NCBI RefSeq assembly: GCF_006345805.1
Contig: NC_043022.1
Span: forward strand, 6,696,001 to 6,760,000
Source of the DNA: Octopus sinensis
Lineage: Eukaryota
Length of the DNA: 64,000 nt
Direction of reading: 5' to 3'
The notes under the pieces: model-generated
The model's input: the letters and a program-made list of their open reading frames with translations, nothing else
Databases searched by the model: none
Told to the model about the DNA's origin: nothing
Program-made: the position numbers and the translations under genes
Shown: positions 3,664-55,414 of the stretch, piece by piece
How the letters are laid out: each line of letters opens with the position of its first letter
Numbering within the stretch: position 1 is the first letter of the stretch

Positions 3664-4305
3664 AAATATAAACACAATCATAAAGAGACAGAGAGAAAGA
3701 GAGAGAAATATGGATACAGAGAGAAAGACAGAGAGAGAGGCGAGGGAGAGAAAGAGAGAGAAATATGGATATAGAGAGAAAGACAGAGAGAGGGGAAGGA
3801 GAGAAATATGGATAGAGAAATAAAGACACAGAGAGGGGAGGAAGAGAAAGAGCGAGAAATATAGATAGAGAGATAAAGACAGAGAGAGGGGAGAGAGAGA
3901 AATATGGATATAGAGATAAAGACAGAGCGAGGGGAGGCAGAGAAAGAGCGAGAAATATGGATAGAGAGATAAAGACAGAGAGAGGGAAGGGAGAGAAATA
4001 TGGATAGAGAGATAAAGACAGAGAGAGGGAAGGGAGAGAAAGAGCGAGAGAAATATGGATAGAGAGATAATGACAGAGAGAGGGGAGGGAGAGAAAGAGC
4101 GAGAAATATGGATAGAGAGATAATGACAGAGAGAGCCGAGGGAGAAAAATATGGATAGAGAGATAATGACAGAGAGAGGGGAGGGAGAGAAAGAGCGAGA
4201 AATATGGATAGAGAGATAATGACAGAGAGAGCCGAGGGAGAAAAATATGGATAGAGAGATAAAGACAGACAGAGAGGGGAGGGAGAGAAAGAGAGTGTTA
4301 AAAAA
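3664..4305. repeat. GA-rich minisatellite
   Basis: Repeated GAAA(A)ATATGGATAGAGAGATAA(A/T)GACAGAGAGAGG units. Confidence 0.9.
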
Positions 4306-5082: not shown

Positions 5083-5134
<52 letters not shown>

Positions 5135-5137
<3 letters not shown>

Positions 5138-6005
5138 ATTTGTGTTTATGTAAGTGTGTATATATATATACACAGATATGTGTATTTGTGTTTGTGTAAG
5201 TGTGTATATATACACAGATATGTATGTGTGTGTATTTGTGTTTATGTAAGTGTGTATATATACACAGATATGTGTGTGTGTGTGTATTTGTGTTTATGTA
5301 AGTGTGTATATATACACAGATATATGTGTATTTGTGTTTATGTAAGTGTGTATATATACACAGATATATGTGTATTTGTGTTTATGTAAGTGTGTATATA
5401 TACACAGATATATGTGTATTTGTGTTTATGTAAGTGTGTATATATATACACAGATATGTGTGTTTGTGTAAGTGTGTATATATATACACAGATATATGTG
5501 TATTTGTGTTTATGTCAGTGTGTATATATATACACAGATATATGTGTATTTGTGTTTATGTAAGTGTATATATATATACACAGATATATGTGTATTTGTG
5601 TTTATGTAAGTGTGTATATATATACACAGATATATGTGTATTTGTGTTTATGTAAGTGTGTATATATATACACAGATATATGTGTATTTGTGTTTATGTA
5701 AGTGTGTATATATATATACACAGATATATGTGTATTTGTGTTTATGTAAGTGTATATATATACACAGATATGTGTATTTGTGTTTATGTAAGTGTGTATA
5801 TATATATACACAGATATGTGTATTTGTGTTTATGTAAGTGTGTATATATATATACACAGATATATGTGTATTTGTGTTTATGTAAGTGTGTATATATATA
5901 CACAGATATATGTGTATTTGTGTTTATGTAAGTGTGTATATATACACAGATATGTGTGTATTTGTGTTTATGTAAGTGTGTATATATACACAGATATATA
6001 TGTAT
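5135..6005. repeat. minisatellite, roughly 40-46 bp unit
   Basis: Tandem TATATACACAGATATATGTGTATTTGTGTTTATGTAAGTGTG, about 20 copies. Confidence 0.95.
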
Positions 6006-6506
6006 TTGTGTGAATGCATATACAACATTAGCGACAATACTCTGATGATTTTCTTGTTGACCATAAGACTATTTTCATGTGTATTTCGCACTGTTTCTGT
6101 AATATTTTTTTCTGTATGGGATGAAGTCGTTAATCTACATGTCCAGCTTTCAACGTGGATGGCCACGTTTGGTTTTTCTGCCTTGAACCCTGTCCAGAGA
6201 CACAGAATAATCCTTCTTTATTATAAGTTTAACTTCTTTTCATTTCTCTCTCCTTACAAGAAACTCCGCCACTATTTAAACTTTTAGCTCTCGTATTCGT
6301 AAGTACGATCCTACAAACTACAAACTTGATTTTATATATATATAAAGATCTCTCTTTTAAGTAGAAAGAATAGCCATAACTCTGACTGCTATTTCTAAAT
6401 TCGGTGTGTGGTGAGGCAAATCGTTGCTAAACCCTTAATTACTTTATATATATATGGCGGTGCCCCAGCATGGCCACAGCTCGTGAGCTGAAACTAGAAT
6501 CAATCA

Positions 6507-6542
<36 letters not shown>

Positions 6543-9496
6543 TATATGCCCTATACACATTACTCTGATCTAATGTGCACATCTGTAGGTCCCTGTGCGT
6601 ATGGGGGTGTATTTATACCAACAGTCTTTGTATTATTAGCAGTTGTTGAATTAATCTGTCCTCAGACCGTAATCTTAAACTTCTAATTCATAAATGCTGA
6701 CCCTAACCGAAGCTTTTAATAATTATCATAAATTTGAACTAACTTTCATTGAATATTACTGTAAATCAGACCGTCAGCGGTTTTGTTTTGGACAAACACT
6801 TGTTTGATTCGAACCGGGAATCTGAAATCTTTTAAGTTTAAGTGGCGACGGTGGGTATTTAAACCCACCCCATCATTCTTGGGGTGGAGTCTTCTATAGG
6901 TTCTTATCAGAAGCAACTGTCGATACTCTCGTCCAGTCCTTGCTCGGACGGTTCTTTGTAGTTTGAGATCATATCCCACCGAGGTCTATTTTGCCTTTCA
7001 TCTCTTGGGGCGGTTAAAAAAAAAAAAAGACTCACTCCAAGAACGGGAGATAGGGGAAACGGTATTCTTTCGTTACAAGAACGTGAAGTCTCATGTCTTT
7101 TGTAATTTGTTTCGACTCTTTGCGTTCTGAGTTCAAATCCCGTCATGGCCTGGCCCGGTTTAACACCACCATTTTCCCTCTTGGATCTCTCTGATAACGT
7201 TCACCCCGTGCCAAGCAATCAAGCCAGGTCTATGGTTTAAGAATGCCTTTCTCCCTCCCTCGTCCCAGTACTCACGGAGGCCCTGTAAAGAGTCAGGAGC
7301 ACAGCCCCTTCCCTGACTCCCTACCACTGGACTATTGTACCCTCATCCCGAAAGGGACCACTTGCCTTTGGCTCCTGACATGACCTACCTCCTCTCTCTG
7401 CCGTTAAGACTTGGTTAACTGGTGATTTAGCTGTTATTTCTCGTAAGTAGATTCCTTGTTTGTTTAATCCTGATACAAGTTGACTTACGATCAAAAGCAT
7501 TCCAGACATGACCGTCCCGTCTGTATATATCTAAAACCACAGGTTCGCGCTTGTTGTGACATCGTTCAACTCAGAGTGCAACGTTTATTTAAATTTCTAT
7601 ATTCTAAGTTCAAATCGGACCAAAGTTTGTCTTGCGATATTTTACAAGTACTGGAGCCAAATTTGTGGCCGTGTGTTTTCCTCCTCCTCCTCCACATTAC
7701 TAAGTTATGAATTATCTTCATCACTGAGTGCCTTAAAATGTTTTATTTCGACTGTTTTGTGTGTGTTTACGAAGTAGTGTACCAGTCATCTACTGAGGTT
7801 GATTCAGTTGTTTTGTAAATCCTTCCCTGTGTGATGATAGGAAAAAAAAAAAGCTTGTTTGTAAGTCTGTTCTTTAAAAAGATCGTTTTAATGTTAGGAA
7901 AACCATCTTCTTTCCCCCCTGAAAATGGTTTGTTGACGGACTTTTTATCACACACACGCACACAATATAGAAGAAAAGTACTCAATGCAGGTTCTTACTT
8001 TATTTTGGTCGTTTACAACTGTGGCCATTCGGGGATATTGCCTTCATGCCGTAGAGTTTGTGTGTGTGTACAACTATATATGATATTTAAGCTTATTTGG
8101 GTCATTCTTTATAAAATCCATCGTTAAACTTGGCTACAGTTCAAATTGTGTTTCTTTTTATTTTGAATTCCATTAGATTAATTGTTAAACACTAAATTAA
8201 TTGTTAAAACTGAGAAGCTGTGGAGTGTGATGACTGGTGACTGTGAAATATAAACACGAAGCGTGGTGCGGTGGTGGTGGGGTGCGTCTGTCGGGCGATT
8301 TTGGCGCACAAAAATGACATCACGAAAACAGCGAAAGTCATTGAAATTATTGAAGTGATAGTGTTGCTGTAGCTTGGCCGTGATGTTTATTTAATAAACG
8401 GGTCCATTCCAGTTAGATCTCATCCTTTTTAGGACATATTTTCTCTTTTATTTAGTGTGCCGTTGTTAGCATGGAACTTTTAATAGTAATGTGTGTATGT
8501 GTATGTAATGTGTTATTTGTATTATGTTATATATGTGTGTGTGTGTTCCATATATATAAATATATATATATAACCAACGAAGAGAACAACAGCTCGGTTA
8601 CCCGATCTGCTAGAAATAGTTGTCGAATGACTGCCCACCGTTTTAAAAGGAGGACACCTTAGCTAAGTGATCGATGATCAGAGATATTGCTTTAACGGCG
8701 AGGCTGGAATGATTTCAATGACGGGGGACACAGTCTGTGGTATCGGTTTACCTGAGCTAGCAGAATCGTTAGCACGTCGGGCGAAATGCTTAGCGGTATT
8801 TCGTCTGCCGTTACGTTGTGAGTTCAAATTCCGCCGAGGTCGACTTTGCCTTTCATCCTTTCGGGGTCGATAAATTAAGTACCAGTTAAGCACTGGGGTC
8901 GGTATAATCGACTTAATACCTATGTCTGTCCGTGTTTGTCCCCTCTATGTTCAGCCCCTTGTGGGTAATAAAGAAATTATTATCGGTTTACCTCGATGTC
9001 TAAGAATAAAACAAATACTGTGTCGTATGGAGAGGAGGCGGAGTGTGTGTGAGCATTGCCGTGAAACAATTTTGGGGGGACATCTAGAGAGGCATGGAAC
9101 CTATACGTGGTAGCTTCAACTGCTAAAAATAACAGCTACCTCCAATCACACCCTATTACTTAGAAAAATAAGAGGGCAAAGGCAGTCTAGATAATGTACT
9201 TTTAGCTCGGCAAATACTTTTGAAAGATGATTGGAAAGTCTTTGGTCCTTAGATCAGTTGGATCAGAGCTGAGTTGGTGATTAAACAAAAGAGACATACT
9301 AATTTGAAAATTTGCTCAAGGCCAGCAATTTCAGTGAGGCAGGGGTGGGGTTTGCTAAGTTGTTTACATTGATCCCAGTTCTCAGCTGGTATTTATTTTA
9401 TTGACCCTGAAAGGCATGAAGGGCAGAGTCGACCTCAGCGGAATATGAACTCAGAACCTGAAGATGGCTGAAATGCCACTGTGTTTTCCCCGTCAT

Positions 9497-9709
9497 ACTC
9501 TTACTCTTTACTCTTTTACTTGTTTCAGTCATTTGACTGCGGCCATGCTGGAGCACCGCCTTTAATCGAGCAACTCGACCCCGGGACTTATTCTTTTGTA
9601 AGCCCAGTACTTATTCTATCGGTCTCTTTTGCCGAACCGCTAAGTGACGGGGACGTAAACACACCAGCATCGGTTGTCAAGCAATGCTAGGGGGACAATC
9701 ACAGACACA

Positions 9710-9769
<60 letters not shown>

Positions 9770-10046
9770 CGACAGGCTTCTTTCAGTTTCCGTCTACCAA
9801 ATCCACTCACAAGGCTTTGGTCGGCCCGAGGCTATAGCAGAAGACACTGCCCAAGATGCCACGCAGTGGGACTGAACCCGGAACCATGTGGTTGGTTAGC
9901 AAGCTACTTACCACACAGCCATCTGCGCCTAATAAGTCTGGTACTTATTCTATCGGTCTCTTTTGCCGAACCGCTAAGTGACGGGGACGTAAACACACCA
10001 GCATCGGTTGTCAAGCAATGCTAGGGGGACAATCACAGACACACAA

Positions 10047-10079
<33 letters not shown>

Positions 10080-10242
10080 CGACAGGCTTCTTTCAGTTTC
10101 CGTCTACCAAATCCACTCACAAGGCATTGGTCGGCCCGAGGCTATAGTAGAAGACACTTGGCCCAAGATGCCACGCAGTGGGACTGAACCCGGAACCATA
10201 TGGTTGGTAGACAAGCTACTTACCACACAGCCACTCCTGCGC
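9497..10242 (-). mobile_element. SINE family 1 (tRNA head, CORE-like CTTGGGCAAGT, (GAGTAAAA)n tail): dimer of a 3'-truncated copy (9941-10242) and a full copy (9497-9929)
   Basis: A box TGGCTGTGTGG, B box GGTTCAGTCCC. Resembles the octopus OR-type CORE-SINEs as recalled; name not verified. Confidence 0.85.
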
Positions 10243-10486: not shown

Positions 10487-10843
10487 AGTGGCTGTGTGGT
10501 AAGTAGCTTGTTTACCAACCACATGGTTCCGGGTTCAGTCCCACTGCGTGGCATCTTGGGCAAGTGTCTTCTGCTATAGCCCCGGGCCGACCAATGCCTT
10601 GTGAGTGGATTTGGTAGATGAAAACTGAAAGAAGCCTGTCGTATATATGTATATATATATATATGTGCGTGTGTTTGTCCCCCTGGTGTGTTTACGTCCC
10701 CGTAACTTAGCGGTTTGGCAAAAGAGACCGATAGAATAAGTACTGCGCTTACAAAAAGAATAAGTCCCGGGGTCAATTTGCTCGACTAAAGGCGGTGCTC
10801 CAGCATGGCCGCAGTCAAATGACTGAAACAAGTAAAAGAGTAA
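10487..10843 (+). mobile_element. SINE family 1
   Basis: Same head, body and tail. Confidence 0.88.
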
Positions 10844-12899: not shown

Positions 12900-13573
12900 T
12901 GGCAAGACATGGTACCTCAGCATCTTGTAGTCAGCACCCACCTTTAAGGCCCTTTGATTCTAGACCTTGCTTCCACACCTGAAACTTCTAGTTCTGGTAG
13001 TGACTCAGTTATTAGAGCAAGGTCATCAGCATAAAGGAGCTCCCAGGGGCATCCTGTCTTGAATTCCTCTGATGAATAAGAGGGGCTCAGAACTGATCCT
13101 TGGTGAACCCCTACTTCTACCTGGAATTCTTCACTATATTCATTGCCAATCCTCACTTTACTGACAGCATCCCTGTACATGGCTTGTACAGTTCTCACTG
13201 AGCACTCATGTATCCCTAGTTTCTGCATTGACCTCCAGATAAGGAACTGGAGGACCCTTTCAAAGGCTTTCTCCATGTCAACAAGAGCCAAGTACAGAGG
13301 TTTATCTTTGGTTAGGTATTTCTCCTGCAGCTGTCTTACCAGAAATATGGCATCAGTGGTGCTTTTCCCTGGCACAAACCCAAACTGCATCTCATCTAAA
13401 CTATATCTCTCCCTAATTAGATGGGCTATAACCCTTTCTTTGACTTTCATCACCTGATCCAATAATTTGGTACCTCTGTAATTGTTTCTATCTAAGGCGT
13501 TACCTTTACCTTTGTAGCAGTTGACTATAGTGCTGCTACACCAGTCATTGGGTATGACTCCTTTGTGTATCAC
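12900..13573 (-). mobile_element. decayed RTE-clade LINE RT fragment
   Basis: YKGKGNALDRNNYRGTKLL, QFGFVPGKSTTDAIFLVRQLQEK, GVHQGSVLSP, LLYADDLAL. Confidence 0.92.
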
Positions 13574-17141: not shown

Positions 17142-17426
17142 ACATACGCAAGTTCACATAATCTTCATATTCGCACACGTTTACCAACACACACACGTCA
17201 CACATCCTCACACGCACACACATACTTGTTGTCTTTTTGCCACCCTTGTCTCCAATCACATCCTTCTTCCTGGTCAGTTCAAAATCTGCCACTGTTAATC
17301 CAGACATGTTTTTTTACCCCTCTCCATCTCTTTTCCTCTCCTCACATCTTTTTATAGAGTATAGGCTCGAAATGTCAAAGACATTTCCATTTTTCCAGCG
17401 CGTCAAACTAAAACTTATATATATAA

Positions 17427-17853: not shown

Positions 17854-18425
17854 ATCATCATCGTCGTTTAACGTCCGCTTTCCATGCTAGCATGGGTTGG
17901 ACGGTTCAACTGGGGTCTGGGGAGCCCGAAGGCTGCACCAGACCAGTCAGATCTGGCAGTGTTTCTCCAGCTGGATGCGCCCTTCATAACGGAACCACTC
18001 GAGAGTGTAGTGGGTGATTTTATGTGCCACCGACACAGGTGCCAGACGAGGCTGGCGAACAGCCACGCTCGGATGGTGTTTTTTATGTGCCACCGACACA
18101 GGTGCCAGACGTGGCTGGCAGACGGCCACGCTCGGATGGTGTTTTTTATGTGCCACCGACACAGGTGCCAGACGAGTCTGCGAACGGCCACGCTCGGATG
18201 GTGTTTTTTATGTGCCACGACACAGGTGCCAGACGAGGCTGGCAGACGGCCACGCTCGGATGGTGTTTTTTATGTGCCACCGACACAGGTGCCAGACGAG
18301 TCTGGCGAACGGCCACGCTCGGATGGTGTTTTTTATGTCCACCGACACAGGCCAAACGAGCTGGCAGACGGCCACGCTCGGATGGTGTTTTTTATGTGCC
18401 ACCGACACAAGTGCCAGACGAGGCT
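17854..18425 (-). mobile_element. retroposon family 3 ((GAT)n tail, AGGAAGGGCATCCAGC body) with seven ~61-63 bp tandem subunits
   Basis: Tail CATCATCATC on + at 17854; tandem unit GGTGTTTTTTATGTGCCACCGACACAGGTGCCAG... Confidence 0.85.
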
Positions 18426-18996
18426 GTGCTATTCTGTGGTGCTGAGATTAACAAAAAAAAAAGTACCCCATCTAATGAGAGGTAAATATTATTTAAGAAA
18501 CGCAATGTGTTTTCATGTGCTGAGAACATGATTATGCCATATGGGCAGTGTCTGATGATTGTACTGGGACACAGGCGTGTTATAAAGCAATGTTTGCCAT
18601 TTCAGCACATGAAACTAATAGTAGCCCATAAAAACACATATTGTATTTATATAATATATGTATGTATGTATACAATGGGCTTCTTTCAGTTTCCATCTAC
18701 CAAATCCACTCACAAGGCCTAAGGCTAGAGTAGAAGACACTTGCCCAATGTTCCACATATCTCTCATCCCTTGAGATTTGATAAAATTTGAACCAAACAA
18801 ATAATGCTGGGGTCAATATGATTGACTCCACCCTCTCTTCAGAATTTATGACTTTGCACCAAAGTTAGAAATTGTTCTTATTATTTTACATTGAAGACTG
18901 TGTTTTGGGATTTGTTTGTTCCACATTCCTGGTGAGAATATGAAGAGAGTGTAATAGAGAGGTATCAGCTATTTTAGGTTTTAGGTGTGCGTATAC

Positions 18997-21589: not shown

Positions 21590-22020
21590 TTGGTACCAGT
21601 GCCGGTGGCACATAAGAAAACCATCCGAACGTGGTCGTAGCCAGTATCGCATCGACTGGCCTCCGTGCTGTGGGCACGTAACAAACACCATCCGATCATG
21701 GCCGTTCGCCAGCCTCGTCTGGCACCTGTGTCGGTGGCACATAAAAAAACACCATCCGTGCGTGGCCGTCTGCCAGCCTCGTGTGGCACATAAAAAACAC
21801 CATCCGAGCGTGGCCGTCTGCCAGCCTCGTCTGGCACCTGTGTCGGTGGCACATAAAATCACCCACTACACTCTCGGAGTGGTTGGTGTTAGGAAGGGCA
21901 TCCAGCTGTAGAAACACTGCCAGATCTGACTGGCCTGGTGCAACTTTCGGGCTTGCCAGACCCCAGTTGAACCGTCCAACCCATGCTAGCATGGAAAGCG
22001 GACGTTAAACGATGATGATG
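21590..22020 (+). mobile_element. retroposon family 3
   Basis: Same body and (GAT)n tail. Further copies at about 23848-24125(-), 24625-24941, 29016-29276, 37405-37600, 47874-48016, 54712-55057(-), 55985-56196, 57690-57826 and 59702-59893. Confidence 0.85.
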
Positions 22021-24516: not shown

Positions 24517-25142
24517 GTGAGTTTTTAGGAATTTACTTCTCCGTTCACTTACAAACTTCAAATTCTAATCATTCTACAGTTTTTCCTTTTTTTTTTCTTT
24601 TAAAGCTGTTTTATGTTCCTTGTCTGGCCCCCGTGTTGGTGGCACGTAAAAGCACCATCCGTTCGTGTCCGTTTGCCAGCCTCGCCTGGCCCCGTGCCGG
24701 TGACACGTAAAAGCACCATCCGTTCATGGCCATTTGCCAGCTCTGTCTGGCACCTGTGCGGGTGGCACGTAAAAAGCACCCACTACACTCACGGAGTGGT
24801 TGGCGTTAGGAAGGGCATCCAGCCGTAGAAACACTGCCAGATCTGACTGGGCCTGACGAAGCCTTCCAGCTTCACAGACCCCAGTTGAACCATCCAACCC
24901 ATGCTAGCATGGAGAACGGACGCTAAATGATGATGATGATCATAGTGGTTCTTTAGCCCAAGGTCAGCTCCGTTTAATCCCACCTGTATCCAAATGCATT
25001 CCTGTCCTTTATTGAGGACACACTGTATCTAGGACTACAACATACAATGTTGACTTCCTTTTCTTTAAGATGGTAGAATGGGATTTGAGTAAGAGTTACC
25101 GTCTTTCTTCAGCACTTCAACCTCACACTCCTCACTCTCTTT

Positions 25143-25926
25143 GGCGAGCTGGCAGAATCGTTAGCATGCCGGGCGAAATGCTTTGCGGTATTTCGTCTGC
25201 CGTTACGTTGTGAGTTCAAATTCCGCCGAGGTTGACTTTGCCTTTCATCCTTTCGGGGTCGATAAATTAAGTACCAGTTACACACTGGGGTCAATATGAT
25301 CGACTTAATACCTATGTCTGTCCTTGTTTGTCCCCTCTGTGTTTAGCCCTTTGTGGGTAATAAAGAAATAGGTATTTCGTCTGTCTTTACGTTCTGAGTT
25401 CAAATTCCGCCGAGGTCGACTTTGCCTTTCATCCTTTCGGGGTCGATAAATTAAGTACCAGTTATGCACTGGGGTCGATGTAATTGACTTAATACCTATG
25501 TCTGTCCTTGTTTGTCCCCTTTGTGTTTAGCCCTTTGTGGGTAATAATGAAATAGGTATTTCGTCTGTCTTTACGTTCTGAGTTCAAATTCCGCCGAGGT
25601 CGACTTTGCCTTTCATCCTTTCGGGGTCGATAAATTAAGTACCAGTTATGCACTGGGGTCGATGTAATTGACTTAATACCTATGTCTGTTCTTGTTTGTC
25701 CCCTCTGTGTTTAGCCCTTTGTGGGTAATAAAGAAATAGGTATTTCGTCTGTCTTTACGTTCTGAGTTCAAATTCCGCCGAGGTCGACTTTGCCTTTCAT
25801 CCTTTCGGGGTCGATAAATTAAGTACCAGTTACGCACTGGGGTCGATGTAATCGACTTAATACCTATGTCTGTCCTTGTTTGTCCCCTCTGTGTTTAGCC
25901 CCTTGTGGGTAATAAAGAAATAGGTA
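25143..25926 (+). mobile_element. SINE family 2 head followed by four tandem 184-bp bodies
   Basis: Unit starts GGTATTTCGTCTG at 25187, 25371, 25555 and 25739. Confidence 0.92.
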
Positions 25927-32690: not shown

Positions 32691-33716
32691 GTGAGTAATA
32701 CTAGTTTTATTAATTGACTTTGCCTTTCATCCTTTCGGGGTCAATAAAATAAGTAGCAGTTAAGCATTGGGGTCAGTGTAATTGACTAGCCCCCTCCTCC
32801 AAATTTCAGTGCCCATAGTAGAAAGGATTATTATTATATGTGATCAATGCCAGGCCTGTCTGACTGGCTCCTGTGCCAGTGGCACGTAAAAAGCACCCAA
32901 CACACTGTGTTTGGCATTAGGAAGGGCATCCAGCTGTAGATCAGACTGGTGCCTGGTGCATTCACAAAGACAGTCACAAACACCCACACAAGCAATTTAC
33001 ATTGTTTGGATCAATACAGATATGAGCATGAGACTTATTAAACCAGCTTATGGCCTAACTGAGAAATCTGAATTTGGGCAATGGTGGTTTGCAGGAACAT
33101 TGGTGTATACGTGTGTGCAAGCAGGGTTGTGTGTAAAGGAGTCTAGGACTTTTACCTTCATGAACAATTACCCCTGGGGGACAACAGATGAGGATATGAA
33201 ACTTCTTAGTATATCAGAGAGAGGGTAATTAACCAAGTGGGGGTAGTTGTCCTGATACGGGGTTAAGAAGCTTGCTTTGCAGTTAAATGGTCCAGTGTCA
33301 CTGTATGGCACCTTGGGCAAGTGTCTTCTGCTATAACACCAAGCCAACCAAAGCCTTTAAATAGATTTGGTAGATGGAAACTGAACGAAGCCTGTCGTGT
33401 CTTTGTGATGGTGCTTCACCACTATTTGACGACTGGTCTTGGTGTGTTTACATCCCTGTAACTTAGCAGTTTGGCAAGAGAGAGCGATAGGATAAGTAGC
33501 ACACTTAAAAACATTGGGATCAAGGCAGTGCCCCAGCATGGTCGCAGTCTGATGACTGGAACAAGTAAAAGATAAAAGACACAGTAATTCATATATTATA
33601 ATAGTATTGTATATATAGTGTGTGTATGTATATATTATGTATGTATGTGTGTGTGTATATATATATATGTATGTATGTAAGAACTTACTGTGGACAAAAA
33701 TAAAAAAAAAAAATAC

Positions 33717-34116
33717 ACAGTGGCTGTGTGGTAAGTAGCTTGCTAACCAACCACATGGTTCCGGGTTCAATCCCACTGCGTGGCACCTTGGGCAAGAGTC
33801 TTCTGCTATAGCCCCGGGCCGACCAATGCCTTGTGAGTGGATTTGGTAGACATAAACTGAAAGAAGCCTGTCGTATATATGTATATATATGTATATGTAT
33901 GTGTGTTTGTGTGTCTGTGTTTGTCCCCCTAGCATTGCTTGACAACCGATGCTAGTGTGTTTACGTCCCCGTTACTTAGCGGTTTGGCAAAAGAGACTGT
34001 TAGAATAAGTACTGGGCTTACAAAGAATAAGTCCCGGGGTCGATTTTCTTGACTAAAGGCGGTGCTCCAGCATGGCCGCAGTCAAATGACTGAAACAAGT
34101 AAAAGAGTAAAAGAGA
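33717..34116 (+). mobile_element. SINE family 1 with a very long flanking duplication
   Basis: Same consensus; see finding. Confidence 0.9.
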
Positions 34117-34547
34117 GTATGTGTGTGTGTGTGTATATATATATATATGTATGTATGTAAGAACTTACTGTGGACAAAAATAAATTTTAAAAAATACTCG
34201 TACTCGATTCAGTTATTTTGACTGCAGCCATGCTGGAGCACCGGCTTTAGTCGAACAGATTGACCCCAGGACTTATTCTTTCTAAACCTAGTACATATTC
34301 TATCGGTCTCTTTTGTTGAACTATTAAGTTATGGGGGATGTAAACACACCAACATCAGTTGTTAAGCGATGGTAGGGGGATAAACATGCACACACACACA
34401 CACACCACACACACACACACACATAATGCAAATGAGAAAAGGGAGAGAATATACAATCGTTAAACATCAGCCAGTAAATATTCAATTATATCTATTTATC
34501 AACTAATTACAAACATGTTTGTAATCATTTGATAAATAGATAGCCAG

Positions 34548-34619
34548 TCCTTGGTAGTATAGTGGTAAGTATCCCCGCCTGTCACGCGGGAGACCGGGGT
34601 TCTATTCCCCGCCGGGGAG
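34548..34619 (+). tRNA. tRNA-Asp(GTC): tRNA-Asp(GTC) copy, probably a retroposed pseudogene
   Basis: 72-nt cloverleaf. Acceptor stem TCCTTGG/CCGGGGA plus discriminator G73; anticodon arm CCCGC-CTGTCAC-GCGGG (GTC at 34581-34583); T-loop TTCTATT has T instead of the conserved purine at position 57. Confidence 0.92.
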
Positions 34620-34632
34620 GCTCATACTTTAT

Positions 34633-35037
34633 GGCGCAGGAGTGGCTGTGTGGTAAGTAGCTTGTTTACCAACCACATGGTTCCGGGTTCAGTCCCACTG
34701 CGTGGCATCTTGGGCAAGTGTCTTCTGCTATAGCCTCGGGCCGACCAATGCCTTGTGAGTGGATTTGGTAGACGGAAACTGAAAGAAGCCTGTCGTATAT
34801 ATGTATATAAATATATATATGTATGTGTGTGCGTTTGTGTGTCTGTGTTTGTCCCCCTAGCATTGCTTGACAACCGATGCTGGTGTGTTTACGTCCCCGT
34901 TACTTAGCGGTTCGGCAAAAGAGACCGATGGAATAAGTACTGGGCTTACAAAAAGAATAAGTCCCGGGGTTGAGTTGCTCGATTAAAGGCGGTGCTCCAG
35001 CATGGCCGCAGTCAAATGACTGAAACAAGTAAAAGAG
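34633..35037 (+). mobile_element. SINE family 1, full length, fused behind pre-tRNA-Asp
   Basis: Same consensus; see finding. Confidence 0.92.
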
Positions 35038-35351
35038 TAAATAGATATAATTGAATATTTACTGGCTGATGTTTACTGATTGTATATTCTCTCCATTTTC
35101 TTATTTGCGTTATAAATCCTGGGTAAATTTCTAATTTACCCCCACCCATATCTAATTGCGATATTGCTATGCAATAGGAAGCACTTGGTTATAAATACTT
35201 GGGTACACATCAAGTAGTACATAGGATATTTAATAGCTCTTGGATGGTTTCTTAACCTCTAACTCATACAGAAATATACATAGTTCAAATTTACAGAAAA
35301 CAAACCACGAAGACAGGTGAGGGAACAACAAAGCAGGTATATTAGTTTGAC

Positions 35352-35777
35352 ATTTCATTTCATTTCATTTGAGTTTGAGTCCATGCTCAGGCCAAGTCGA
35401 AGACTCCACCCTCAGAGTCTGGTGTGGTTGCCAGGTTGTATTCTCTGTTTAATTTTGACATGTGTAGGAGCGAGTTTGAGTCAGTTTGTGCTCGTTGTGT
35501 ATATCCTGGGAGATGGGGTTCATCTCTAATGGTGCTTAAGTATCTATCCAGTTGCAATTTGAATGATTCCACACTGCATCCTGATAGATTTCTGACATGT
35601 ACCGGAATGGAGTTGAATAGTTGTGCTCCTTGAACCAACAGACTTGACTCTCGCAGGGTTTTTGCTGCCTGGCCAGCCTTTTTGTTGATTGGTGGTAGCT
35701 GGCAGCGTCTTCCGTGGCGCAGTGAGTGGTAGGTTTTGATACCAAAGTTTGGCACCTTTTGCTCTATCATTTTCCAA
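35352..35777 (-). mobile_element. CR1/L2-type LINE 3' fragment with (TGAAA)n tail
   Basis: QGAQLFNSIP...FKLQLDRYLSTIRDEP...DSNSL; near-identical shorter copy at 48456-48717. Confidence 0.9.
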
Positions 35778-48455: not shown

Positions 48456-48717
48456 ATTTCATTTCATTTCATTTGAGTTTGAGTCCATGCTCAGGCCAAG
48501 TCGAAGACTCCACCCTCAGAGTCTGGTGTGGTTGCCAGGTTGTATTCTCTGTTTAATTTTGACATGTGTAGGAGCGAGTTTGAGTCAGTTTGTGCTCGTT
48601 GTGTATATCCTGGGAGATGGGGTTCATCTCTAATGGTGCTTAAGTATCTATCCAGCTGCAATTTGAATGATTCCACACTGCATCCTGATAGATTTCTGAC
48701 ATGTACCGGAATGGAGT
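48456..48717 (-). mobile_element. second, shorter copy of the same LINE 3' end
   Basis: Near-identical to 35352-35618. Confidence 0.9.
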
Positions 48718-48824
48718 CGATTCTTTTGACTAAAAATTTCTTCAAGGCATTGCCCCAGCCTGGCCACAGTCTAACGCCTGAAACACAGAAAGGTAAACTG
48801 ATGAGTATGTTTATGTTTTCACAG

Positions 48825-53679: not shown

Positions 53680-55414
53680 TATCAACTGAAATTAATATCA
53701 ATCATAATACAGTATTAGCATTGATTCTTGAGTGACAAAGTGGTTAATTAGGATTGAGAGCTTGATTACCAAATGAACAGTGGCCAATACCTTGTTCTTC
53801 ATACTCAGTCGCACTCCCACCCATTTTACCATTCTAACTAGGCCTGAATGACTTTTGGCACATGGCCAGTAATTTTGGAGGTGGGGTAAGTTGATTACAA
53901 CACGCCACCCCTAATATTTGACTGGTGCTTAATTTCATTGACCTTGAAAGGATGAAAGGCAAAGTTAATCTCAGCAGAATTTGAACTCGATCTAAGGATG
54001 GATGAAATTCCGCTAAGCATTTTGACTGGTATGCTAACTGTTCTACCAGCTTGCTGTCTTGATGATGATGGTGGTGGTTTTAAATTTTCTCATAAGGGCA
54101 GCAAATTTAGAGGTGGGGCATAGTCGATTACATTTGACCCCAGTATTTCACTGGTATTTAATTTATCAACCCCAAAAGGATGAAAGGCTAAGTCAACCTT
54201 GGTGGAATTTAAACTCAGAACTTAAAGACAGATGAAATACACATCTAAGCATTTCGCCCAGCGTGCTAATGATTCTGCCAGCTCCCCACCTAATGAGAAT
54301 AATCCTTTCTACTACAGGCACAAGGCCCGGAAGTTTGGGTTGGGGGGTGTGGGGTTAGGTTGATTACATCAACCCCAGTTCTTAACTGGTACTTGCATTA
54401 TTAACCCTGAAATGTTGAGAAGCAAAGTCAAATTCTGCTTTTAAATTTTGGCACAAGGCCAGCAATTTCAAGAGTGGGCTAAGTCGATTAGAGTGGCCCC
54501 AGGATTCAACTGGTAACTCTTTCATCAACTCTGAAAGAATGAATAACAAGGTTCACCTCGATGGAATTTGAACTCAGAACGTAAGATGACCTGCTGCTAA
54601 GCATTTTGATTGATGTGCTAACAATTCTGTGAAGGAAAAAAAGGTTGAGGTATTGTTTTGCAACTGACAGCCCTTCCTTGTTGCTAATTCTCACCTGTTT
54701 CTCAAAGAATCATCATCGTTTAGCGTCCGTTTTCCATGCTGCCATGGGTTGGACGGTTCGACTGGGGTCTGGGAAGCCAGAAGGCTGCACCAGGCCCAGT
54801 CAGATCTGGCAGTGTTTCTACGGCTGGATGCCCTTCCTAACGCCAACCACTCCGTGAGTGTAGTGGGTGCTTATTACGTGCCACCCGCACAGGTGCCAGA
54901 CAGAGCTGGCAAATGGCCACGAACGGATGGTGCTTTTACGTGTCACCGGCACGGGGCCAGGCGAGGCTGGCAACGGACACGAACGGATGGTGCTTTTACG
55001 TGCCACCAACACGGGGGCCAGACAGAGCTGGCAAACGGCCACGAAACGGATGGTGCTTCGAAAATGGATTTTGTTTTTATTCCATGCCCCTTTGAAAGTG
55101 CAGAGGTAGAGGGCAACTTGGTTTGTAGGAAATGTCCACAAGCATTTGTTTTTTCTCAACACTTTGATGTGAGGGTCCAGAACGCAGACATTTACTGGGA
55201 TTCCACACAGTTTCCTTCTACCAATTCCCCTGAGGAGGCATTGGTTGACTTGAAGATGAGGTACCCAAGGAATTATGCAGTGAGATGGAACTCAAGACTA
55301 GTGGTTATAAACCAAAGTCTATATCTATTCAACTATGCTTATGAAAGTGTTTACAAAATAAACATTAACCGCTAATTACTGGTATTAATCCTAATTATTT
55401 TCTGTCTGTTTCAG

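Follow-up and report, generated by a model that had tools for sequence, protein, structure and literature searches.

A pre-tRNA-Asp sequence joined to a full-length SINE within a single target-site duplication in Octopus sinensis

Organization of the locus

We analyzed a stretch of 64 kb of Octopus sinensis DNA (the window), which contains at least 13 copies of one SINE of about 400 bp, reverse-transcriptase fragments and many microsatellites. This repeat content fits the published description of octopus genomes as SINE-dominated and carrying active RTE-clade LINEs (PMC9115989). Upstream of one SINE copy lies a tRNA-Asp sequence, and a single target-site duplication encloses both parts, inserted in an older inverted repeat. 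The features are listed below, with positions counted from the first base of the window.

34423-34515, no strand: left arm of the pre-existing inverted repeat (93+93 bp; target), complementary to the right arm at 86/93 positions after excision of the insert
34516-35113, no strand: right arm of the inverted repeat, consisting of 34516-34542 plus 35048-35113 (from the excision comparison)
34533-34542, + strand: 5′ copy of the target-site duplication, TAAATAGATA, exact match to 35038-35047
34543-34547, + strand: leader GCCAG, 5 nt, first base a purine (read from the sequence)
34548-34619, + strand: tRNA-Asp (anticodon GTC), 72 nt, without CCA (ARAGORN; Rfam RF00005)
34620-34630, + strand: 3′ trailer GCTCATACTTT, with a T3 run at its end (34628-34630; from the sequence)
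34631-34632, + strand: AT dinucleotide at the boundary of trailer and SINE (from the sequence)
34633-35037, + strand: full-length tRNA-derived SINE with the tail AAGTAAAAGAG at 35027-35037 (from 12 other copies in the window)
35038-35047, + strand: 3′ copy of the target-site duplication, starting with TAAA, exact match to 34533-34542
35096-35099, + strand: first T4 run downstream of the tRNA start, 477 nt past the tRNA 3′ end

The duplication is a perfect 10-bp repeat whose two copies are the only ones on the + strand of the 64 kb, and it is also the longest string common to both flanks of the whole unit. The preliminary description had placed two exact copies at these positions and, between them, a leader, a 72-nt tRNA-Asp, a trailer, AT and a complete SINE on the same strand; all of these coordinates hold. 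The tRNA-Asp and the SINE have the same orientation (+) and are separated by 13 nt. Reading across the junction, the tRNA-Asp 3′ end is followed by GCTCATACTTTAT and then by GGCGCAGGAG, and the junction string ACTTTATGGCGCAGG has one occurrence in the 64-kb window.

A comparison of flanking sequences was performed for each part. Neither the SINE alone nor the tRNA alone has a duplication of its own, the best internal match being 4 nt, and a separate tail is lacking in the tRNA segment. Separate duplications for the two parts were rejected on the basis of this 4-nt match. As a chance control, the window was shuffled 20 times, which gave 0-7 exact 10-mers at a spacing of 495-515 bp (median 0-1); this count includes repeated 10-mers anywhere in the 64 kb, while the real pair sits exactly at both ends of the element. 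The insert combines RNA-derived parts in the same orientation, a single outer duplication and a tail suited to LINE priming, which are features of a bipartite chimeric retrocopy. Based on these results, it is well supported that pre-tRNA-Asp and SINE entered as one 505-bp unit in a single retroposition event, since neither part has its own duplication and since only an exact 505-bp excision restores the palindrome (see below). The earlier claim that both parts arrived together is thereby confirmed by one perfect duplication, the absence of partial ones and the restoration of the palindrome by exact excision only.

The tRNA-Asp segment

The tRNA-Asp(GTC) at 34548-34619 is the only tRNA detected by ARAGORN in the 64 kb. 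It reaches 55.4 bits with the Rfam tRNA model (RF00005), compared to a gathering score of 29. The base pairs were checked by hand and the cloverleaf is intact; together with the GTC anticodon and the score above threshold, this is what is expected of a functional gene. The A box is found at 34555-34565 and the B box, GGTTCTATTCC, at 34598-34608. However, the B box departs from the consensus GGTTCGANTCC, as the purine at position 57 of functional genes is replaced by T, visible as a T-loop mismatch in the Rfam alignment. The other odd position is U5.G68, a second wobble pair in the acceptor stem, at a former CpG. These two odd positions in 72 nt compare with about 0.5 expected from the private divergence of the SINE, a weak excess (Poisson p ~0.1). 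Furthermore, the tRNA-Asp has a G7-C66 pair, the vertebrate counterpart of which is U-A.

The discriminator base is followed by GCT, not CCA, and the trailer together with the next two bases reads TTTAT. Instead of a terminator of T4 or longer, only the T3 run at 34628-34630 is present close after the tRNA 3′ end, and T4 runs are absent from 34543 to 35095. A transcript from the tRNA promoter would meet its first canonical Pol III stop at the T4 run 35096-35099. The beginning of GCCAG probably represents a transcript 5′ end, with the Pol III start site a few nt upstream of position +1 of the tRNA. Because of the purine start 5 nt upstream, the T3 end and the missing CCA, we strongly infer that the tRNA segment derives from RNA, namely from an unprocessed Pol III primary transcript. 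Its shape is that of a primary transcript without RNase P or RNase Z cutting, unlike that of a mature tRNA or of a random DNA fragment. The structure proposed before, a pre-tRNA with leader and trailer kept and no CCA, was supported by every test which we ran.

Two other origins of the segment were considered. A fragment of a tRNA gene captured as filler DNA would hardly have ends that both resemble those of a transcript, and this origin is therefore unlikely. Use of the tRNA as a primer of an LTR-type element was rejected, there being neither an LTR element nor a CCA end.

The SINE segment and its family

The SINE at 34633-35037 has an A box (34643-34653), a B-box-like motif (34686-34695) and an internal (TA/TG)n stretch, and its sense strand is free of T4 runs. 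It matches 12 other copies in the window with 86-94% identity, all of which start at or after its first base. This first base, the beginning of GGCGCAGG, is common to about eight other full-length copies in the window, and other full-length copies begin with GGCGCAGG right after their duplication (e.g., 53284 and 17424). Thus, 5′ start, A and B boxes, body and tail are all common to dispersed copies, as expected for a member of this family. A truncation of the 3′ partner at an arbitrary point of its 5′ side is not seen, as the SINE begins at G1; such a start agrees with read-through or an end-to-end jump rather than with a switch at an internal position. A tRNA head is absent from the 12 other copies in the window. 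Beyond the window, metagenome and prokaryote-genome collections gave no match to a flexible junction pattern (spacer of 5-25 nt), but SINE-only patterns also had no match there or in a viral collection, so these negatives do not bear on the copy number in octopods.

Compared to the consensus of the window, the SINE part shows 9 differences in 381 positions (2.4%), most of which are common to other copies. Just about two to three changes are private, which indicates that the insertion is young.

The tail AAGTAAAAGAG also occurs in other copies (SINE tail consensus: AAGTAAAAGAGTAAAAGAG). The first 4 nt of the 3′ duplication, TAAA, continue the tail repeat as well (GAGTAAAA), and this overlap would correspond to the 4-nt priming microhomology expected when a nicked target primes on the tail. 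At other SINE copies, duplications starting with TAAA or TA adjoin the tail, for instance the duplication of about 17 bp at 17424. Duplication lengths among the SINE copies range from about 7 to more than 55 bp (the latter at 33719).

On the antisense strand of the SINE, an ORF of 83 aa was found, the last residues of which cross the junction. A homology search with this ORF gave a single hypothetical protein of Argonauta hians; an exact match was not found in the protein collection, nor was one found there for two LINE ORFs near the insert. The Argonauta hians locus (L001) contains a fragment of the central SINE region with 87% identity over 113 nt. Only these 113 nt of the SINE centre were found at that locus, and a tRNA was not found there.

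The inverted repeat at the target site

The insert breaks the right arm of the inverted repeat 27 bp from its centre. Removal of 34543-35047 yields two arms of 93 nt each without a spacer, matching at 86 of 93 positions. When the excision is shifted by 1-6 bp in either direction, the arms match at just 43-49 of 93 positions. Across the excision point itself, the arm agrees with its partner at all 35 of 35 positions. The register of the palindrome is therefore evidence which is independent of the duplication. The palindrome had been described as exactly symmetric, which is right for arm length and register (93+93, no spacer) but not for the sequence, which has seven mismatches.

The inverted repeat is single-copy in the 64-kb window. 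It starts where a (CA)n tract and a reverse-oriented, 5′-truncated relative of the SINE (34201-34415, 81% identity) end. It could have originated as a foldback element, a MITE or an inverted duplication. An origin as part of the 3′ end of the neighbouring LINE was rejected, as LINE homology stops at 35352, outside the arm; its single occurrence in the window also speaks against a LINE 3′ end.

Other repeats in the window

Several further repeats were observed. The SINE at 33719-34111 (+), in the region 33640-34195, is flanked by a duplication of about 57-78 bp which includes a microsatellite (…GTATGTATGTAAGAACTTACTGTGGACAAAAATAAA). This copy is 5′-truncated by 9 nt and has an A-rich filler of about 16 nt, AAAAAAAAAATACACA, at its 5′ junction; the copy at 10487 has a similar 16-nt filler and the same truncation point. 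At 9504-10242 (-), two SINEs are arranged head-to-body: the first stops at about consensus position 316 (…AAGTACCAGACTTAT), after which come TA and the second SINE, which is complete. The missing part of the first copy was not found downstream. Both members of this pair contain the rare variant GTGATTG and differ at subfamily positions. The pair may have arisen by template switching between SINEs or by a rearrangement.

A tandem array of four 184-bp units with 96% identity is located at 25187-25926, and its unit contains a tRNA-like B-box motif, GAGTTCAAATTCCGCCGAGGTCGAC. The array resembles a short satellite that evolved from a second SINE family. A related motif adjoins the SINE pair at about 9430-9480.

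LINE 3′ fragments at 35352-35616 and 48456-48720, both on the - strand, are 99.2% identical. Their ORFs end with …NREYNLATTPDSEGGVFDLA, and their tail is (AAATG)n, unlike that of the SINE. Thus, a LINE with recent activity is present at a distance of 300 bp from the chimera, but it is probably not the partner of the SINE. At 12944-13573 (-), a fragment of a reverse-transcriptase domain (Pfam RVT_1, E = 2.9e-15) marks one LINE remnant among several in the window.

A repeat of about 60-63 bp (TTTTATGTGCCACCGACACAGGTGCCAGACGAGGCTGGC…) forms arrays at 18018-18426, 21734-21837, 24624-24780 and 54866-55058, on both strands, and gives long spurious ORFs; these arrays probably belong to one dispersed element with an internal minisatellite. 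Large minisatellites are present at 5133-6011 (46 bp × 19 copies, 90% identity) and at 3691-4295 (a GA-rich array with periods of 53-247 bp).

Discussion

For the joining of the two parts, the preliminary description had named template switching or RNA ligation, and alternatively Pol III read-through. Template switching and read-through both fit the sequence, while ligation is disfavoured by the end chemistry of RtcB. Between the first two, a template jump is modestly favoured. In this scenario, a LINE enzyme would prime on the SINE tail at a nicked target in the right arm of the older inverted repeat, and its reverse transcriptase would copy the SINE RNA to the 5′ end (G1). One or two untemplated bases, now visible as AT, would then be added before the enzyme changes template, end to end, to a nascent pre-tRNA-Asp at its oligo-U 3′ terminus. 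Finally, the pre-tRNA would be copied to its 5′ end and the cDNA joined to the target. Whether SINE RNA and pre-tRNA were joined in this way, by a template jump within one target-primed reverse transcription, we consider evenly balanced. AT could be the non-templated filler of such a jump or belong to the 3′ flank of the source gene.

The 5′ segment ends in a U-run at most 2 nt from the junction; such a U-run is required if the enzyme jumped onto a terminated Pol III transcript, but not in the case of read-through. End-to-end jumping implies a completely copied 3′ partner, and the SINE starts at its first base; its small distance from the family consensus is what RNA of an active source would show. 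That the partner LINE of the SINE carried out the retroposition agrees with the 5′ end and the tail, both of which match the 12 other copies. Within the window, the copies at 10487 and 33719 have 5′ fillers of about 16 nt, and at 9504-10242 a SINE is joined to the inside of another SINE; because of these fillers and this join, 5′ junctions of the family must be called often untidy. Moreover, a template jump is the published explanation for the snRNA 5′ extensions on SINEU-2 (PMC4494074).

On the other hand, three points weigh against a jump. TTTAT alone belongs to a class of weak, leaky terminators, so AT may belong to a genomic trailer and the whole unit may derive from a read-through transcript. 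The two odd tRNA positions could mean, though weakly, that the template was a decaying tRNA copy rather than fresh pre-tRNA. Finally, published tRNA/L1 chimeras are mostly antisense half-tRNAs, not full pre-tRNAs in sense orientation (PMC11838501).

The main alternative is Pol III read-through, i.e., a 5′ transduction from a source locus in which a SINE lies 13 nt downstream of a tRNA-Asp gene, having landed before or within the tRNA terminator. The resulting dicistronic RNA would have been retroposed via the SINE tail. We regard this as possible, if somewhat doubtful. No T4 run interrupts 34543-35095, the leader fits a tRNA start site, and no filler has to be assumed. If the source gene was no longer under selection, the two odd tRNA positions would be accounted for. 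In human, T3VT motifs act as weak, non-canonical terminators of Pol III, and TTTAT falls into this class, which permits read-through (PMC3141230). For SINE 5′ extensions, 5′ transduction is a named alternative (PMC4494074). With about one SINE per 5 kb in the window, a few tRNA genes with a same-strand SINE in the trailer are expected genome-wide, as a rough estimate. Nevertheless, the SINE must hit a stretch of about 13 nt, and the position of the U-run directly at the junction would have to be accidental. In addition, such a precursor should normally be processed by RNase P and RNase Z.

We regard it as improbable that the copy descends from a composite SINE family with a tRNA-Asp head that was already established and used the tRNA promoter; such a family would itself stem from a template jump or from read-through. 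Both promoter boxes are kept and an internal T4 is absent, and the slight decay of the tRNA (T57, U5.G68) beside a young SINE could reflect several generations without tRNA function. Composite SINEs of the Bov-tA type arose likewise (PMC4494074). However, 0 of 12 other SINE copies in the window have a tRNA head, and the junction occurs once there. The tRNA still reaches 55 bits with an intact cloverleaf, which argues for a very recent derivation from a real gene.

All options besides template jump, read-through and such a daughter copy are improbable even when taken together. Two separate events, with the tRNA placed at the SINE 5′ junction later or the reverse, or an assembly mis-join in repeats would be conceivable in a repeat-dense region, but are very unlikely: neither part has its own duplication or tail (longest shared flank string: 4 nt), the ends of the tRNA segment are transcript-like, a perfect duplication surrounds the whole unit, and the palindrome returns in exact register when the unit is excised. 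As to ligation, a nascent pre-tRNA ends with UUU-OH, and a full-length SINE primary transcript carries a 5′-triphosphate. RNA ligation of the RtcB type between pre-tRNA and SINE RNA before reverse transcription, as for U6/L1, would yield the same sense-sense architecture with a single duplication, and RtcB acts on tRNA substrates in the nucleus (PMC6789731). Yet RtcB needs a 2′,3′-cyclic phosphate donor and a 5′-OH acceptor, and ligation is much reduced if either end is swapped for a 3′-OH or 5′-triphosphate (PMC6789731); as neither RNA is expected to bear the required ends, and with AT left unexplained, we consider this route most unlikely.

Small-RNA 5′ extensions on SINEs (PMC4494074) and tRNA/LINE chimeras (PMC11838501) have already been published. 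The locus is a retrotransposon chimera of this known kind, its mechanism is not new, and as a single locus it is a useful example rather than a surprise. In models of SINE origin, a Pol III small-RNA module is fused to a LINE-recognised 3′ module during reverse transcription. The evidence for these models comes mostly from old, degenerate families. The present locus illustrates cleanly how a new SINE with a tRNA head could begin: in a SINE-dominated lineage, a whole pre-tRNA, including its promoter, was placed before a complete SINE in one step. The case is young and unusually clean, because the inverted-repeat target predicts the empty site base by base. If compared with parent or sister copies, the locus could tell capture of nascent Pol III transcripts by an octopod LINE from tRNA-SINE source loci.

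The 505-bp copy could also be transcribed as a composite from the tRNA promoter, since the A and B boxes of the tRNA are kept and no T4 stop follows until 35096. It appears unlikely that we see here a tRNA-Asp-headed composite SINE at its origin or in one of its first generations, with transcription starting at the tRNA promoter and passing the leaky TTTAT. If true, an intact tRNA gene with its internal promoter would have been mobilised on a SINE tail, and octopods would have a route to replace or double SINE heads and to disperse potentially functional tRNA genes.

Comparison with known systems

In the bipartite U6/L1 chimeric retrogenes (Buzdin 2002; PMC4476161; PMC6789731), as apparently here, the oligo-U end of a sense-oriented Pol III small RNA on the 5′ side meets a retroelement; also as here, a single duplication surrounds both parts, and LINE machinery made the insertion. 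The earlier comparison with this type holds only in part, since the 3′ partner is a variably 5′-truncated L1 there and a full-length SINE here. Further, the 5′ partner here is an unprocessed pre-tRNA with its leader, unlike in U6/L1, and the octopod LINE uses a short-repeat tail instead of poly(A). The U6 route (2′,3′-cyclic phosphate and RtcB) does not fit the RNA ends in the present case.

Primate tRNA/LINE-1 chimeras, of which 21 loci were reported (bioRxiv 2025, PMC11838501), also combine tRNA sequence and a retroelement within one duplication. They are mostly antisense half-tRNAs explained by twin priming, whereas the octopus locus has a whole sense tRNA with leader and trailer on a SINE. 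The tailless tRNA retropseudogenes of mammals (Schmitz 2004; PMC5322556) are similar in that a tRNA or pre-tRNA was retroposed between duplications; they stand alone, while here the SINE supplies the tail.

Concerning read-through, dicistronic tRNA units (Orioli 2011, PMC3141230) share with our locus a weak T3VT terminator followed, if read-through took place, by a downstream RNA on one transcript. In the 5′ transduction of SVA and L1, upstream sequence is carried along by a retroelement in a like manner. To our knowledge, a retroposed tRNA-SINE read-through transcript has not been documented.

In Bov-tA (tRNA head and Bov-A) and other composite or dimeric SINEs, a tRNA promoter module is likewise located upstream of an existing short retroposon. 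These are multi-copy families with degenerate heads, whereas the octopus chimera is known from one copy with a nearly intact tRNA. Bov-tA demonstrates that a family can arise from a tRNA head placed before a short retroposon that already existed.

Closest to our case is the 5′ extension of crocodilian SINEU-2 by U1 snRNA, where a small RNA was added 5′ of complete SINE copies (Kojima 2015, PMC4494074). The same two candidate mechanisms, template jump and 5′ transduction, apply there, and the extension was proposed as a route of SINE head birth. The extra RNA of SINEU-2 is a Pol II snRNA, variably 3′-truncated and present in 26 copies; in Octopus sinensis, it is a complete Pol III pre-tRNA in one known copy.
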